DNA of 64,000 nucleotides from sequence record OR413581.1. One strand, written 5' to 3'. Positions 8,376-29,207 of this stretch are shown one piece after another. Within the stretch, counting starts at the first letter, position 1; each line of letters begins with the position of its first letter. Below the pieces are notes generated by a model. The model did no database searches and was not told the origin of the DNA. It was given only the letters and a program-made list of their open reading frames with translations. The position numbers and the translations under genes were made by a program.

Positions 8376-8398
8376 TTACGTTAGCCTGAAACCGTATG
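8376..8398 (+). promoter_or_regulatory. bipartite promoter candidate TTAC-N15-TATG
   Basis: AAATATTAC at 8371-8379, TATG at 8395-8398; same spacing at 9 other intergenic sites. Confidence 0.65.
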
Positions 8399-16694: not shown

Positions 16695-17111
16695 ATGATT
16701 AATGAGAAGCTCCAAAAGTATTTAAAGAATGACACCGACTGGATGGTCCTTGACCAGTACGGACGATTTGTTCCGCTATCCAAGGATTCCCCTATACCCC
16801 GTGACAAGGCGATTTATATTCCTGACGGTAAGGGCGGTTATCGTTTCTGGGAAGGCCAGGAAGTAAAAGAGGAAATGTTCTACATGGAGCCGAAGTTCCG
16901 TGCGGCGTTCCCATCGAAAAATATCAACGGCTATGTTTACAACGCAATTCCGCCAATTACGCACCCTAATTTTGAGGTTGTGAATTACCCTGCAACTGTT
17001 TTGGATTGGCAACGTGCCATTAGTGAACACTACACGATTCCGCTTGAAGGTGTTTACTTCCCATTCCGTGATATTAGTTTAGATGACTTTATTAACTCTC
17101 TTAAGGACTAA
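16695..17111 (+). CDS. hypothetical protein
   Basis: 138 aa, RBS AAGGA. Confidence 0.75.
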   Translation: MINEKLQKYLKNDTDWMVLDQYGRFVPLSKDSPIPRDKAIYIPDGKGGYRFWEGQEVKEEMFYMEPKFRAAFPSKNINGYVYNAIPPITHPNFEVVNYPATVLDWQRAISEHYTIPLEGVYFPFRDISLDDFINSLKD

Positions 17112-17113
17112 AA

Positions 17114-17974
17114 ATGTACAGCATTACTGATTTCATCAAAAGTTCAGATTTCCCCCTACCTCCCGACCACGAAGTATTGGCTAGCGATCCGTTAACCGAT
17201 GCGGCCATTGTCCAGCTGGACCGCGACAAACGTCGTACTTACGTCGTGTTGGTCGAAGGGCAGAGCTACGGCCTGTCTTCTTACGACCTGGAGCAGCAGG
17301 AGCGTTTCCTCGATGAAAACCGCAAAACGTCAATGTATAGCGCTATCTCGCGCGCGTTGTGCAAGGTAATGGCGACGATCACAGACAGCAAAAAGCGCAT
17401 TGCCGTGCTACAGGGTATCAATGCGCTAACGACCAAAATCCAGCAACTTGAAGGTTTCCATTGCCCACGATTGGAAGCCGCACAGAAGGATGCTAAGGGC
17501 GATGAGGCCATGGCGCTGTTTGAAGGCAATACTGTCTTTGCAACAGCTGAAGCTTGTTATCTCACCTATCCAACTTTTAACTATACGCCAATCAGCGACA
17601 CCGTAGACGGGATTAAAGTAGAGAACGTCGTGCAATGGGGTCGCGCAAATCTCAAGTTTGTGATGTCCCATGAAGAAGAAAATCAAGACGGCCTTGGCCA
17701 GAAGATTCAACGTTGGTTCACGGCGCGTTTGGACGCCGACTGGGAAGCGCATGTTAACGCAGAGCTTCGTAAGTTTCACGCGGTAGTCGCATTGTTAAAA
17801 GAAGACGCTCCCGCCCCGAAACAATCGAAGGCACCAGTGGTTGGCTGGACGTGTTCCGGCTGTAACCGCAACCATGTCGCTACAGTACCGAGAACTCATC
17901 GCTACACTTCGCAGACGATGAACATTGCTTGCCCGGCTTGCGGTAAGATCAACGAAGTTGATTATAAACCGTAG
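17114..17974 (+). CDS. hypothetical protein with C-terminal zinc ribbon
   Basis: 286 aa; CSGC...CPAC at C-terminus. Confidence 0.75.
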   Translation: MYSITDFIKSSDFPLPPDHEVLASDPLTDAAIVQLDRDKRRTYVVLVEGQSYGLSSYDLEQQERFLDENRKTSMYSAISRALCKVMATITDSKKRIAVLQGINALTTKIQQLEGFHCPRLEAAQKDAKGDEAMALFEGNTVFATAEACYLTYPTFNYTPISDTVDGIKVENVVQWGRANLKFVMSHEEENQDGLGQKIQRWFTARLDADWEAHVNAELRKFHAVVALLKEDAPAPKQSKAPVVGWTCSGCNRNHVATVPRTHRYTSQTMNIACPACGKINEVDYKP

Positions 17975-17980
17975 TAGTAC

Positions 17981-18020
17981 CCCCTCTTACCTTCGGGTAA
18001 GAGGGTTTTATATTTATTTT
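17981..18020 (+). terminator. intrinsic terminator (25 nt identical to 44467)
   Basis: CCCCTCTTACC-TTCG-GGTAAGAGGG plus T-rich tail. Confidence 0.9.
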
Positions 18021-18023
18021 CCG

Positions 18024-18062
18024 AAAAGAAAATAAAAGGCGCTCTCTCCCGAAGGAGAGAGC
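18024..18062 (-). terminator. minus-strand intrinsic terminator
   Basis: Minus strand reads GCTCTCTCC-TTCG-GGAGAGAGC followed by T-rich tail. Confidence 0.8.
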
Positions 18063-18088
18063 TTATTCACATCCACTTAGAGGTTAAC

Positions 18089-18235
18089 ATGAATACCTTT
18101 ATACAACAACTGCGTCAGCAACAGCTGAAACAAGTCGCTTTTCAACAACGTCTGCAAGAGGTTAGCCGCCAACCGCAGACTTCCACCCGTACCATTAAAG
18201 GACTAGGAGGTGACATCATCTTCAATAAGAAGTAA
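18089..18235 (+). CDS. 48-aa Gln-rich peptide, tandem paralog A
   Basis: Not in ORF track. MNTFIQQLRQQQLKQVAFQQRLQEVSRQPQTSTRTIKGLGGDIIFNKK; RBS AGAGGT; 18/48 identical to paralog B without gaps. Confidence 0.8.
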   Translation: MNTFIQQLRQQQLKQVAFQQRLQEVSRQPQTSTRTIKGLGGDIIFNKK

Positions 18236-18243
18236 CACTAACC

Positions 18244-18266
18244 AGGGGTGCTCGAACACCCCTTTT
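18244..18266 (+). terminator. hairpin/terminator after peptide A
   Basis: AGGGGTG-CTCGAA-CACCCCT plus TTT. Confidence 0.6.
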
Positions 18267-18347
18267 AACTCCCGTGACAGTATATCAGTGCATTGTGTAC
18301 CACCACAGCGCAGCGATATATTAACAACCTGCCTAAGGAGGCACTAC

Positions 18348-18494
18348 ATGGAACAACTACGTTCGCAAATACTTAACCATTACGTTAAGCAAACCCAATT
18401 CAACCAACGTGTACAACAGTTGACTGCGCCCAAGCAGAACACTGTTCGTCGTATCAAGGGTTTAGGAGGTGAAATACTACTAAACAAAAGTTAA
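18348..18494 (+). CDS. 48-aa Gln-rich peptide, tandem paralog B
   Basis: MEQLRSQILNHYVKQTQFNQRVQQLTAPKQNTVRRIKGLGGEILLNKS; RBS AAGGAGG 6 nt upstream; same length as paralog A. Confidence 0.85.
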   Translation: MEQLRSQILNHYVKQTQFNQRVQQLTAPKQNTVRRIKGLGGEILLNKS

Positions 18495-18507
18495 CATGAA
18501 ATAACTC

Positions 18508-18535
18508 TTACCCGAGTGTTCCAGCACTCGGGTAA
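18508..18535. other. 11-bp perfect hairpin after peptide B
   Basis: TTACCCGAGTG-TTCCAG-CACTCGGGTAA. Confidence 0.7.
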
Positions 18536-18600
18536 TTCCATGCATATAAATAGTTCGTCGTATTTTTTTTGATCTTGGCAGGACGCATAAACTGCCCGTA

Positions 18601-18618
18601 GGGGAGCCTAAGCTCCCC
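18601..18618. other. hairpin downstream of the helicase stop, no adjacent U-tract on minus strand
   Basis: GGGGAGC-CTAA-GCTCCCC. Confidence 0.55.
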
Positions 18619-18626
18619 AGTGTTCG

Positions 18627-20189
18627 TTAGAACAAATCATCACCCATTCCACCGGTGAAGAAGTTGATAGACGACGCTGTTACGGTTTCTTCTTTATCAC
18701 AATCCCAAGGCAGGATGCCAACATCCTGGAAAGGTATCACTGTGTAGTGATAAGATTCTTTAGTATCGATAATGGTGCGGTGCTTACCGCGTTGAACTTC
18801 TAAGAAGCTATGGCCGTTGACCACACGCTTGTTAAAATACATTTCACCATCGGCCTCGTTATCAAGGCTCGAACAACTATCGTAAAGACCACGACCAGGT
18901 AAGTTCTTACAGAAACCTACCGGGTCTAACGCTTTTAAGCGCTTACCTTCTGGGGAAATCTGGTGTGGGGCAATTAAGAACCCACGGTTGCGTACCACTT
19001 GGATGTTACGAGCAATACGATAAATTTCTTTGATATCACTCCCGGCAATACCGTTGCCGTGTCCTGCTTTGCTGATTGTGCCTAAGTAGTCTGCGCGAAT
19101 GCCAACAACATGATAACCGCGACGACGTAAGTCGAGAATAAGGTCGTTGATGTAGTGCACTTTAAAATCGGAGTTGGTGTGCTTTTGGAAAACGTAGTCC
19201 CAACCGTTTGCGCGAATCTTACCACAGAGGTAATCAGACATTGCTGTTGTGTGTGCTAACTTCTCTTCAGCGGTCGCATCTTGGGCAATGGTCATCTGTG
19301 GAACTTGTCCTTCAAAATGACCGTACAGTGCTTGATAGCCGTAAGCTAAGTTAACGTCGAGTTCGTTTTCTAAACTCAAGTCAAGAATAATTGGTTGCAG
19401 TGTGCCCTTCACATCCGCCATTACTTTCTCAGGCGTGTTGAAGATAGGAATCGACAAGCTCAGTAAGAGACTGAACAAAGACTTACAGTTAAAAGGTAAC
19501 GCCGGCATTAGCCACAGTTCTTCGGTAATCCCTTTGTTACAACCGAGCATTTGGTTAATGGCTTTCCAGCCCGTCTGCAAACCATTACCTGCTGCTTTCT
19601 TGTTAATCGAGTCGAACACTTTAACAAACGGAGCACGATTATCCGTAACCAGCTCACCAACCAGTGATGGAATCTTATTATGAGAGCGTTCACCGAACGT
19701 AGATAGCGCCTCTTTGAGTTCGAGCACTGCGGTGTTCAGATCAACACGTGTCTCAGTTCCATTCAATGCTCCGAACGCGCGACCCATTTTTGTTTTGAGT
19801 TCGACGCTCTGTAAACATTGACGTAATTGGAAATAATATTGAGACAGTTGTCGATTAAGATGCTCGGTACGTTTGTCTTCTTCCTCGGGCAAATCGTCTT
19901 CGAGGAATTTGGTAATCGTATCGTATAGAGGACGTACTTGAGTGGTGGCCAGCTTCAAGCGCTTCATAACGCTCGCGTGGTCGTATTCCATGCCGCCGTC
20001 TATGATAGATGTGATAATGTCCTTGATCTCGATGAGTGCAAAGCGCTCTTCGCCATCTTCCGCATATTCCGGAAGCTTGATCTGCATCAGAACTTTTCTT
20101 ATGACATCATGATCCTTGCTAGGGTCCGTCAGCATAGATTCTGTATACAGTGCGGCTAAGGCGGTTATCAACATCATTTTACTATTCAT
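18627..20189 (-). CDS. dnaB: DnaB-like replicative helicase (phiKZ gp118-like)
   Basis: 520 aa; LQTGWKAINQML, phiKZ-type Walker A ALPFNCKS, RADYL, APHQ, QRGKHR; divergent from the capsid operon. Confidence 0.88.
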   Translation of the reverse strand: MNSKMMLITALAALYTESMLTDPSKDHDVIRKVLMQIKLPEYAEDGEERFALIEIKDIITSIIDGGMEYDHASVMKRLKLATTQVRPLYDTITKFLEDDLPEEEDKRTEHLNRQLSQYYFQLRQCLQSVELKTKMGRAFGALNGTETRVDLNTAVLELKEALSTFGERSHNKIPSLVGELVTDNRAPFVKVFDSINKKAAGNGLQTGWKAINQMLGCNKGITEELWLMPALPFNCKSLFSLLLSLSIPIFNTPEKVMADVKGTLQPIILDLSLENELDVNLAYGYQALYGHFEGQVPQMTIAQDATAEEKLAHTTAMSDYLCGKIRANGWDYVFQKHTNSDFKVHYINDLILDLRRRGYHVVGIRADYLGTISKAGHGNGIAGSDIKEIYRIARNIQVVRNRGFLIAPHQISPEGKRLKALDPVGFCKNLPGRGLYDSCSSLDNEADGEMYFNKRVVNGHSFLEVQRGKHRTIIDTKESYHYTVIPFQDVGILPWDCDKEETVTASSINFFTGGMGDDLF

Positions 20190-20203
20190 GGAGCATCCTT
20201 AAA

Positions 20204-20728
20204 ATGCAAATTCGTTTTAGTCCACCGTGGGAAGTTCAATCTAACATAGATAAAGGGGCTGGCGTTAAAAAGTTGGAGGAACTCCAAGCAAGCTTCTTTA
20301 ACTGGTTATATGACTGCTCGTCGGGCTTTAGTTCCATCATACTGCCAGTGAGTGACCCTATTTCGATTTATAAATCGATTATGGCACCACCTGCACTTCC
20401 GACTCTTTATTATGACCAGGTCTTAAACCTGGTTGAGAAAGGTACGAATGAAACCCTTGCTGATTTATATGGGGAATCATTCGACGGTCGTTTACGTTGG
20501 GTGTTCTCACAACGTGGCGATGTTGTTGTGGCGTCTTTTGCAGAAGCTAAATCCGGACCGGGTTTTTCTTTAAGTGAAGACCACGCTGCGAAAAAGATGT
20601 TCTGCGCAGAACTTTTTAAATATATGCGTCCCAAGACTCGTGTCGTGGATGATACGTTCAGTACGTCGACGCAGTTTGCTGCGCACGAAGTGCTGACGCA
20701 GTTGTACGCATGTCATTTATCTAAATAA
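20204..20728 (+). CDS. conserved protein preceding major capsid (virion-associated in relatives)
   Basis: 174 aa from ATG 20204, GGAG at 20190. Confidence 0.65.
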   Translation: MQIRFSPPWEVQSNIDKGAGVKKLEELQASFFNWLYDCSSGFSSIILPVSDPISIYKSIMAPPALPTLYYDQVLNLVEKGTNETLADLYGESFDGRLRWVFSQRGDVVVASFAEAKSGPGFSLSEDHAAKKMFCAELFKYMRPKTRVVDDTFSTSTQFAAHEVLTQLYACHLSK

Positions 20729-28484: not shown

Positions 28485-28520
28485 GGAGACCTTCGGGTCT
28501 CCTATTATTATTTTTTTATT
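28485..28520 (+). terminator. intrinsic terminator
   Basis: GGAGACC-TTCG-GGTCTCC plus T-rich tail. Confidence 0.8.
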
Positions 28521-29147: not shown

Positions 29148-29207
29148 AAAAGAAAAGGTACCTCTCCCCGAAGGGAGAGGTAAACCTTATTTCTTTTTTC
29201 TTTTTTT
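29146..29207. terminator. bidirectional terminator between convergent genes
   Basis: TACCTCTCCC-CGAA-GGGAGAGGTA flanked by A-tract and T-tract. Confidence 0.88.

Follow-up and report, generated by a model that had tools for sequence, protein, structure and literature searches.

The peptide genes and their family

We analyzed a 64,000-nucleotide stretch of sequence record OR413581.1, hereafter the window, in which two adjacent plus-strand genes, pep1 and pep2, each contain the same internal sequence, TAGGAGGTGA, which resembles a Shine–Dalgarno (SD) site (Table 1). Over bases 17000–20500, the sequence shares 100% identity with Salmonella phage SPLA3 and about 98% with SPN3US (genus Seoulvirus), and by sequence the window is that of an SPN3US-like jumbo phage. 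SPN3US is a phiKZ-related jumbo phage, and phages of this group have two multisubunit RNA polymerases (PMC5312081). On the plus strand, a gene of 138 amino acids (aa) is followed by a 286-aa gene, pep1, and pep2. The minus-strand gene for a DnaB-like helicase comes next, and beyond it lie a 174-aa gene and then the gene for the major head protein. The 64-kb window contains no tRNA genes.

Both peptides match the PHROG 18219 profile over its full length (positions 1–48 of 48), with E values of 5e-26 and 4.8e-26. Homologues are confined to Seoulvirus, Machinavirus, Wellingtonvirus, and related metagenome contigs. The set compared here consists of 24 genes from these three genera. It includes SPN3US-like phages with either one or two copies, SPAsTU and pEa_SNUABM_29 (pEa29), the Wellingtonvirus phage pEa_SNUABM_11 (pEa11), the Machinavirus phages Machina, Huxley, pSal-SNUABM-04, pEa_SNUABM_6, and pEa_SNUABM_43, and eight metagenome or assembly loci. 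All of the encoded peptides are 47–49 aa long and share K-G-L-G-G-[DE]-I near the C-terminus, of which K, G, L, G, G, and I are invariant. Differences between the genes number 828, 609, and 1288 at the first, second, and third codon positions, respectively, a skew toward the third position that is expected of real coding sequence. AlphaFold2 predicts a helix at residues 2–26 and a short β-hairpin at 35–38/41–44 with the Gly-Gly at its turn, at low confidence (mean pLDDT of 69).

Searches beyond the family returned little. There were zero Pfam matches for the peptides, zero Rfam matches above noise, and no usable match for the peptide in the ESM Atlas, and a profile search of 1.8 billion proteins recovered only the family itself and Gln-rich noise. 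Neither pep1 nor pep2 is mentioned in the transcriptome or proteome work that we found. The helicase C-terminus (18627–18660, minus strand) reads F-T-G-G-M-G-D-D-L-F and resembles the peptide sequence K-G-L-G-G-D-I-I-F, with 4 of 8 residues identical. This likeness may be due to chance, or the peptides may imitate the C-terminal tail of the helicase.

Most SPN3US-like isolates (SEGD1, the SPFM series, JN03, SaP7, and EC001) carry one hybrid gene instead of two, a difference of roughly 259 bp. The SEGD1-type hybrid corresponds to pep1 up to nucleotide (nt) 115 and is pep2-like from nt 126, which places the crossover within the shared 10-nt motif. These natural single-copy isolates indicate that one copy suffices. 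The C-terminal tails of the peptides (DIIFNK-, EIILNKR, EIVFTKR, and DILFNKR) are also swapped between genera, again with the joint at the motif.

A shared internal motif that resembles a Shine–Dalgarno site

The initial annotation of this sequence had reported two copies of TAGGAGGTGA at equal positions in the two genes, and we find that each begins 115 nt after the ATG. In the 64 kb, AGGAGGTGA occurs on either strand at only two sites, which are the two motif copies. Chance would predict 0.25 occurrences, and a count of two was reached in 2 of 100 shuffles. The DNA sequences of pep1 and pep2 are 52% identical, and the peptides share 20 of 48 residues. The 10-nt motif is the longest identical run between the genes, followed by runs of 6 nt. 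Around it, codons for the same residue have diverged synonymously (AAA/AAG, GGA/GGT, CTA/TTA, and ATC/ATA in pep1/pep2), as had also been observed in the initial annotation.

The motif is foremost coding sequence for the invariant Leu-Gly-Gly-Asp/Glu, which the low-confidence structural model places in the C-terminal β-hairpin. Because it encodes this part of KGLGG[DE]I, GGNGGNGA is forced by the protein. Written in codons, the protein constraint is YTN/TTR GGN GGN GAN, which accounts for most of the motif.

An initiation site is not indicated by the downstream sequence. As previously described, no ATG, GTG, or TTG lies at a usable distance 3′ of the motif, the sole GTG being part of the motif itself. 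At a 4-nt spacing past the motif, every homologue has an Ile codon, which argues against initiation.

SD-like elements are known to stimulate +1 and −1 shifts in prfB and dnaX, respectively, and a programmed frameshift of this kind would likewise rely on an internal SD-like element acting on the elongating ribosome. One form of it would be a pep1–pep2 fusion made through the open +1 frame at 18210–18494, and the frame leading from the pep1 motif into pep2 is indeed open in the window. However, unlike prfB and dnaX, the pep locus has no slippery site and no conserved second frame. Neither a slippery heptamer nor a shift-prone codon is found at the right spacing past the motif, and the off-frame products are not conserved. 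The fusion frame is interrupted by a stop in one relative (L021), and the single-copy phages have no fusion partner. Frameshifting is therefore close to refuted.

Conservation at silent sites

Within the motif, three silent sites that the protein leaves free are also restricted across the 24 genes. In 23 of them, the Leu codon ends in A (YTA; the remaining gene has CTT), although it begins with either C or T, with several switches between the two. For the middle Gly, GGA is used in 16 genes and GGG in 8, with GGC and GGT never used, and the last Gly is encoded by GGT in 23 genes and by GGC in 1. The GGG codon, which makes the motif read GGGGG, is found in Machinavirus, pEa29, and pEa11. By comparison, all four Gly codons are used in the same 24 genes for Gly38, which adjoins the motif. 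The silent sites of Lys37, Asp/Glu42, and Ile43 vary as well, and the Leu at alignment column 8 varies freely among several Leu codons. The initial annotation had asked whether homologues keep the codons of the motif, and they do not vary freely (YTA in 23, GGR in 24, and GGT in 23 of 24 genes).

Two of these preferences, YTA and GGR, run counter to the codon usage of the phage. In the window, GGA and GGG account for 9.6% and 15% of Gly codons, CTA and TTA account for 6.6% and 18% of Leu codons, and 11 of 93 Gly-Gly pairs start with GGR. Fourfold sites in the neighboring helicase gene are 36–46% identical between genera, which is near saturation. We simulated the evolution of the three silent sites with an F81 model on the helicase tree, using phage codon frequencies. 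The probability of GGT for the last Gly in all lineages was 0.029, that of GGR for the middle Gly in all lineages was 0.006, and that of YTA for Leu in at least 8 of 9 lineages was 0.033. Jointly, these outcomes have a probability of about 5e-6, or about 5e-5 if the frequencies are tilted toward the observed codons.

We considered overlapping or antisense open reading frames (ORFs) as a source of this constraint and rejected them. No off-frame ORF is conserved. The antisense frame shares its wobble positions with the peptide gene and has Pro/Ser fourfold codons there, so it cannot cause constraint at silent sites.

The motif could instead be the imprint of the protein only, produced by LGG(D/E) coding, shared descent, module exchange, and chance at three silent sites, with nothing happening at the RNA level. 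In addition to the bases that the protein dictates, GGT is the commonest Gly codon in any case (43%). The peptide gene is also a mosaic whose segments move between genera. Synonymous codons are shared between pEa29 and pEa11 at 78% in the peptide gene versus 46% in the helicase gene, and one relative (L016) has a Machinavirus-type tail. Because tails are exchanged between genera, the lineages are less independent than the simulation assumes, and the simulated probabilities overstate this independence. The family is small, forming only three clusters at 50% identity among 1.8 billion proteins, and the motif was picked post hoc for its striking look. On the other hand, the silent sites adjoining the motif vary repeatedly in the same sequences, and the first base of the Leu codon switches while the third stays A. 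The retained GGR and YTA are minority choices, and the simulated probabilities remain low even with the tilted frequencies. We regard an imprint of the protein only as less likely than not, and selection on the motif at the nucleotide level is probably real.

Predicted pairing with the 3′ end of 16S rRNA

Read on the minus strand, the motif is UCACCUCCU, which matches the 3′ end of 16S rRNA over 9 nt, as had been pointed out before. The conserved states at the silent sites (A, A/G, and T) are exactly those that pair with 5′-UCACCUCCU-3′ of 16S rRNA, giving AGGRGGUGA as a 9-nt complement. At the middle position, both A–U and G·U form a pair, whereas C or U would not. Duplex energies calculated with RNAduplex against the 16S tail are −16.1 kcal/mol for the motif, −15.0 kcal/mol for the Machinavirus GGG variant, and −7.5 kcal/mol after recoding with the usual codons, CTG GGC GGC. 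The motif pairs with the 16S tail more strongly than the ribosome-binding site (RBS) of either gene (−7.0 and −12.0 kcal/mol). In a comparison among Gammaproteobacteria, conservation was lowest for strong internal SDs (bioRxiv 10.1101/278689), and the conserved motif in the peptide genes runs against this rule.

Constraint at these silent sites could also be real and have a cause other than SD pairing. Candidates are a slowly decoded YUA GGR pair that relies on minor tRNAs, a site in the RNA for protein binding or processing, and a joint for DNA recombination. YUA and GGR are minor codons, and tRNA-Gly(UCC) reads exactly the two codons GGA and GGG. However, rare codons leave the invariant GGT unexplained, and among the Leu codons of the phage, TTA ranks second in use. 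The SEGD1-type crossover between nt 115 and 126 and the reshuffling of tails at the motif would fit a recombination joint, but such a joint uses identity and does not create it. No conserved RNA partner of the motif was found, and RNAalifold gave only a 4-bp helix between the motif and the 5′ arm of the minus-facing hairpin H2 (Table 1), which lacks compensatory change and competes with H2. The local pairing partners of the motif differ from lineage to lineage. A cause of this other kind appears quite unlikely.

Table 1. Genes, motifs, and RNA elements at the peptide–helicase locus (window coordinates)
Feature	Position	Strand	Remarks
286-aa gene	17114–17974	+	
H1, intrinsic terminator of the 286-aa gene	17982–18020	+	10-bp stem, UUCG loop, U-tract; −18.2 kcal/mol; compensatory changes in relatives
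H2, intrinsic terminator	18024–18062	−	9-bp stem (18041–18062), UUCG loop, U-tract (18024–18040); −17.9 kcal/mol
pep1 RBS (AGAGG)	18079–18083	+	weak; duplex with 16S tail −7.0 kcal/mol
pep1	18089–18235	+	147-nt ORF, 48 aa, PHROG 18219; hypothetical protein in SPN3US annotation
Internal SD-like motif 1, TAGGAGGTGA	18204–18213	+	codons Leu39-Gly40-Gly41-Asp42 of pep1
Hairpin after pep1	18244–18263	+	GUG-N6-CAC top, short U run; −12.1 kcal/mol
pep2 RBS (TAAGGAGG)	18334–18341	+	strong; duplex with 16S tail −12.0 kcal/mol
pep2	18348–18494	+	147-nt ORF, 48 aa, PHROG 18219; hypothetical protein in SPN3US annotation
Internal SD-like motif 2, TAGGAGGTGA	18463–18472	+	codons Leu39-Gly40-Gly41-Glu42 of pep2
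H3, hairpin after the peptide gene	18508–18535	unassigned	compensatory changes at 7 of 10 pairs; GUG-N6-CAC top invariant
Spacer elements GGGCAG-TTTATGCGT-CCTGCC, A8 run, TACG-N12-TATG	18543–18598	−	from alignment of relatives
H4, hairpin just past the helicase stop	18601–18618	−	no U-tract; −15.5 kcal/mol
DnaB-like replicative helicase	18627–20189	−	convergent with the peptide genes

Terminators and the end of the helicase unit

The initial annotation had proposed a UUCG terminator with a U-tract that faces the minus direction beyond the peptide genes, and H2 is such an element. Its stem is followed on the minus strand by GCCUUUUAUUUUCUUUU. Across 12 lineages, the stem changes in sequence while its pairing is kept, and the minus-strand tract CUUUUAUUUUCUUU is almost invariant. 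H2 also matches the terminator style of this phage, in which a U-tract follows a GC-rich hairpin whose loop on the transcribed strand is mostly UUCG. Plus-strand terminators of the same style are found at 17982, 23072, and 28485, and a minus-strand one at 29182 stands behind a minus-strand gene. The helicase gene ends at 18627, 565 nt from H2, and the hairpin adjoining it (H4) lacks a U-tract on the minus strand, in agreement with the earlier description of a helicase gene distant from this terminator.

Relatives without the peptide gene clarify the role of H2. Erwinia phage phiEaH2 has no peptide gene, and its helicase is 87% identical. Past the phiEaH2 helicase stop lie, in order, an H4-like hairpin, the TTTATGCGT element, an A9 run, and a hairpin with AAAATAAAAG before it on the plus strand and CUCUUUUAUUUU after it on the helicase strand. 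Beyond this hairpin is the stop of a gene that is positioned like the 286-aa gene of the window. A shorter form of this plan is found at the helicase end in Cronobacter phage CR5, Derbicus, and Vibrio phage pVa-21. Seoulvirus, Machinavirus, and phiEaH2 retain the TTTATGCGT element, and the A8–A9 run, which in the helicase sense lies past the stop, is kept in CR5 and in pVa-21, whose helicase is 38% identical. Because relatives that lack the peptide gene end their helicase unit with the same A-tract and hairpin, H2 is best interpreted as the terminator with which the helicase unit ended ancestrally. By comparative anatomy, the peptide cassette lies between the helicase gene and this terminator, on the strand opposite to the helicase. 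With the genes so arranged, read-through from the helicase gene would be antisense to the peptides.

H3 is followed on the minus strand by a U-rich stretch and may be a leaky helicase terminator that stops most helicase transcripts before they reach the peptide genes. In H3 and in the hairpin after pep1, the GUG-N6-CAC top is invariant in 13 of 13 aligned sequences while the lower stem covaries, and this top may be a recognition site. We also examined the A-rich tract before H2 as a repeated promoter motif, which we rejected, as the tract is unique both in the window and in the nearest complete genome. Its presence in phages without the peptide gene means that it cannot be a peptide-gene promoter there.

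Two further features were seen around the terminators. The 286-aa gene that ends at H1 encodes a zinc-ribbon-like C-terminal tail (CxxC...CxxC), which has a weak match (E value of 0.002) to PHROG 6417, labeled as a translational regulator. Between the plus-strand terminator at 28485 and the minus-strand terminator at 29182, approximately 650 nt contain no ORF of at least 120 aa and may hold small genes or RNAs.

Possible transcription of the minus strand

A T-rich run, TAC(G/A), 13–14 nt, and TATG are often found upstream of plus-strand genes in the window. Sites with this promoter-like pattern lie on the plus strand at 8377, 15029, 23883, 25124, 44504, 50477, and 62200. With a spacing of 12–15 nt allowed, the pattern has 11 plus-strand matches, compared to about 8 expected from shuffles, and the intergenic matches share the T-rich lead and a fixed spacing. 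TATG is the core of phiKZ late promoters (PMC5312081). On the minus strand, TACG-N12-TATG is present at 18562–18543, between the helicase and peptide genes. Its spacing is 12 instead of 14, the upstream part is A-rich instead of T-rich, and it is not conserved outside Seoulvirus. Judged from these features, a separate minus-strand promoter is possible but weak.

Evidence at the RNA level comes from unstranded Logan contigs of four small RNA-seq runs (DNBSEQ libraries) from one study, in which the locus is that of a single-copy relative. Contigs cover the peptide gene in all four runs, and in one run a single contig extends from the 286-aa gene across the peptide gene into the helicase gene. 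In three runs, the contigs add up to a far greater depth over the peptide gene than over the helicase-side spacer, although such depths cannot rank regions. This gives a hint that the abundant RNA species is short and confined to the peptide gene, and most simply its own mRNA. Contig breaks near 18088–18118 were considered as transcript ends and are read instead as branches in the assembly graph. In run X7, a low-depth contig (5.3) at 18184–18513 matches the two-copy arrangement, while the main phage of the library is single-copy. Two phage variants may be present in this sample.

As one of two models, the initial annotation had suggested that a minus-strand RNA, either the 3′ untranslated region (UTR) of the helicase mRNA or a separate transcript ending at H2, silences the peptide mRNA and displays UCACCUCCU as anti-SD seeds that mask other RBSs. 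The position of H2, a conserved minus-strand terminator beyond the peptide genes, fits such an RNA, as do the same A-tract and hairpin at the end of the helicase unit of phiEaH2 and the conserved TATG with an upstream TACG at 18543–18562. Antisense RNAs are made from late promoters in phage AR9 (PMC5312081). Antisense overlap by itself, with no seeds involved, is a plausible arrangement that we rate somewhat below an even chance.

The anti-SD seeds, in contrast, are disfavored. A perfectly complementary antisense RNA puts zero constraint on silent sites. The A-to-G change at the middle Gly turns the minus-strand CCUCC into CCCCC in 8 of 24 genes, which mismatches GGAGG-type RBSs, so the mimic would be damaged in a third of the family. 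The GGGGG variant on the plus-strand RNA still pairs with CCUCC through G·U. This change thus distinguishes the seeds from the other model of the initial annotation, a programmed ribosome pause near the C-terminus of the peptide. Most isolates also carry one copy of the gene and not two, and the promoter-like site that would drive a separate transcript has the wrong spacing and an A-rich upstream part and is not kept in other genera. As a particular target, we considered masking of the helicase RBS and rejected it because that RBS is an ordinary AAGGA with no special match. Silencing combined with anti-SD seeds is thus very unlikely.

Discussion

We favor the interpretation that the motif, on top of its protein constraint, is an internal SD site on the plus-strand mRNA that would hold or slow ribosomes in the final 5–8 codons of the short ORF. 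We give this a probability of roughly 0.4. The plus-strand motif would pair with the anti-SD of ribosomes, and this pairing would hold or slow them over codons 43–47, just before the stop. More speculatively, ribosomes on the 3′ part of the ORF could shield the 147-nt mRNA from nucleases and from antisense helicase read-through. In the most elaborate form of this proposal, the motif would be a ribosome anchor near the stop, with ribosomes covering the micro-mRNA against the antisense 3′ UTR of the helicase, such that the peptide gene and the helicase gene would constitute a translation-gated antisense switch. We consider this form a long shot. In SPN3US-like phages, transcription takes place inside a proteinaceous nucleus and translation takes place outside it, which would make attenuation by coupling of RNA polymerase and ribosome unlikely. 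The observations of the initial annotation are confirmed and go beyond chance. From its overall interpretation, the silent-site constraint is retained, as is the conserved minus-strand terminator, which fits the helicase unit, while the anti-SD seeds are not.

Several points weigh against an internal SD site, including the common use of GGT, the exchange of peptide segments between genera, the small family, and the post hoc choice of the motif. The motif is predicted to be more base-paired than the ORF average (0.16–0.48 versus 0.35–0.53). There is also a hint from the contig depths, which cannot rank regions, that little RNA crosses the helicase–peptide spacer. Finally, pausing of elongating ribosomes by SD-like sequences in vivo is disputed. 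Mohammad et al. 2016 reportedly attribute the pause signal to footprint size selection. Fluman et al. argue that SD-like sequences do pause ribosomes in vivo (PMC4359368).

Internal SD-like sequences have been proposed to serve as programmed elongation pauses (Fluman et al. 2014, PMC4359368; surveys PMC4943179 and bioRxiv 10.1101/278689). The motif in the peptide genes is similar in that a strong anti-SD complement lies within an ORF, no start codon follows it, and its silent sites are conserved. It differs in its length of 9 nt, which places it among the strongest possible, and in its location 5–9 codons before the stop of a 48-codon phage ORF. It is also conserved, whereas strong internal SDs are normally purged. 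A non-initiating SD-like sequence, STAB-SD, is found in cryIIIA of Bacillus thuringiensis and is thought to bind the 30S subunit and protect the mRNA. STAB-SD lies in the 5′ leader of a Gram-positive mRNA and blocks a 5′ exonuclease, whereas the motif described here lies inside an ORF, near its 3′ end, in a phage of an enterobacterial host. The arrangement with the helicase gene resembles lambda OOP RNA/cII and the Listeria excludon, in which a terminator beyond a convergent gene makes the 3′ part of a transcript antisense. For the peptide and helicase genes, such an overlap is predicted from the terminator position and comparative anatomy. The components are all of known kinds, and what is new is their combination, in which a micro-gene located between a helicase gene and the helicase terminator contains a conserved internal SD of 9 nt.

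The dispute over the action of internal SDs on elongating ribosomes in vivo, together with surveys that find strong ones purged, gives this locus its interest, as it holds a strong internal SD at silent sites across three phage genera. Because a gene of 147 nt is easy to recode, it offers a compact test case. In nucleus-forming phages, the locus also provides an example of a gene that is enclosed, on the other strand, by a replicative helicase gene and the terminator of that gene. The spatial separation of transcription and translation in these phages means that any regulation at the locus must act after transcription. If the translation-gated form of the proposal is true, the peptide genes would be a clear natural case of an internal SD under positive selection for what it does to ribosomes during elongation or termination.

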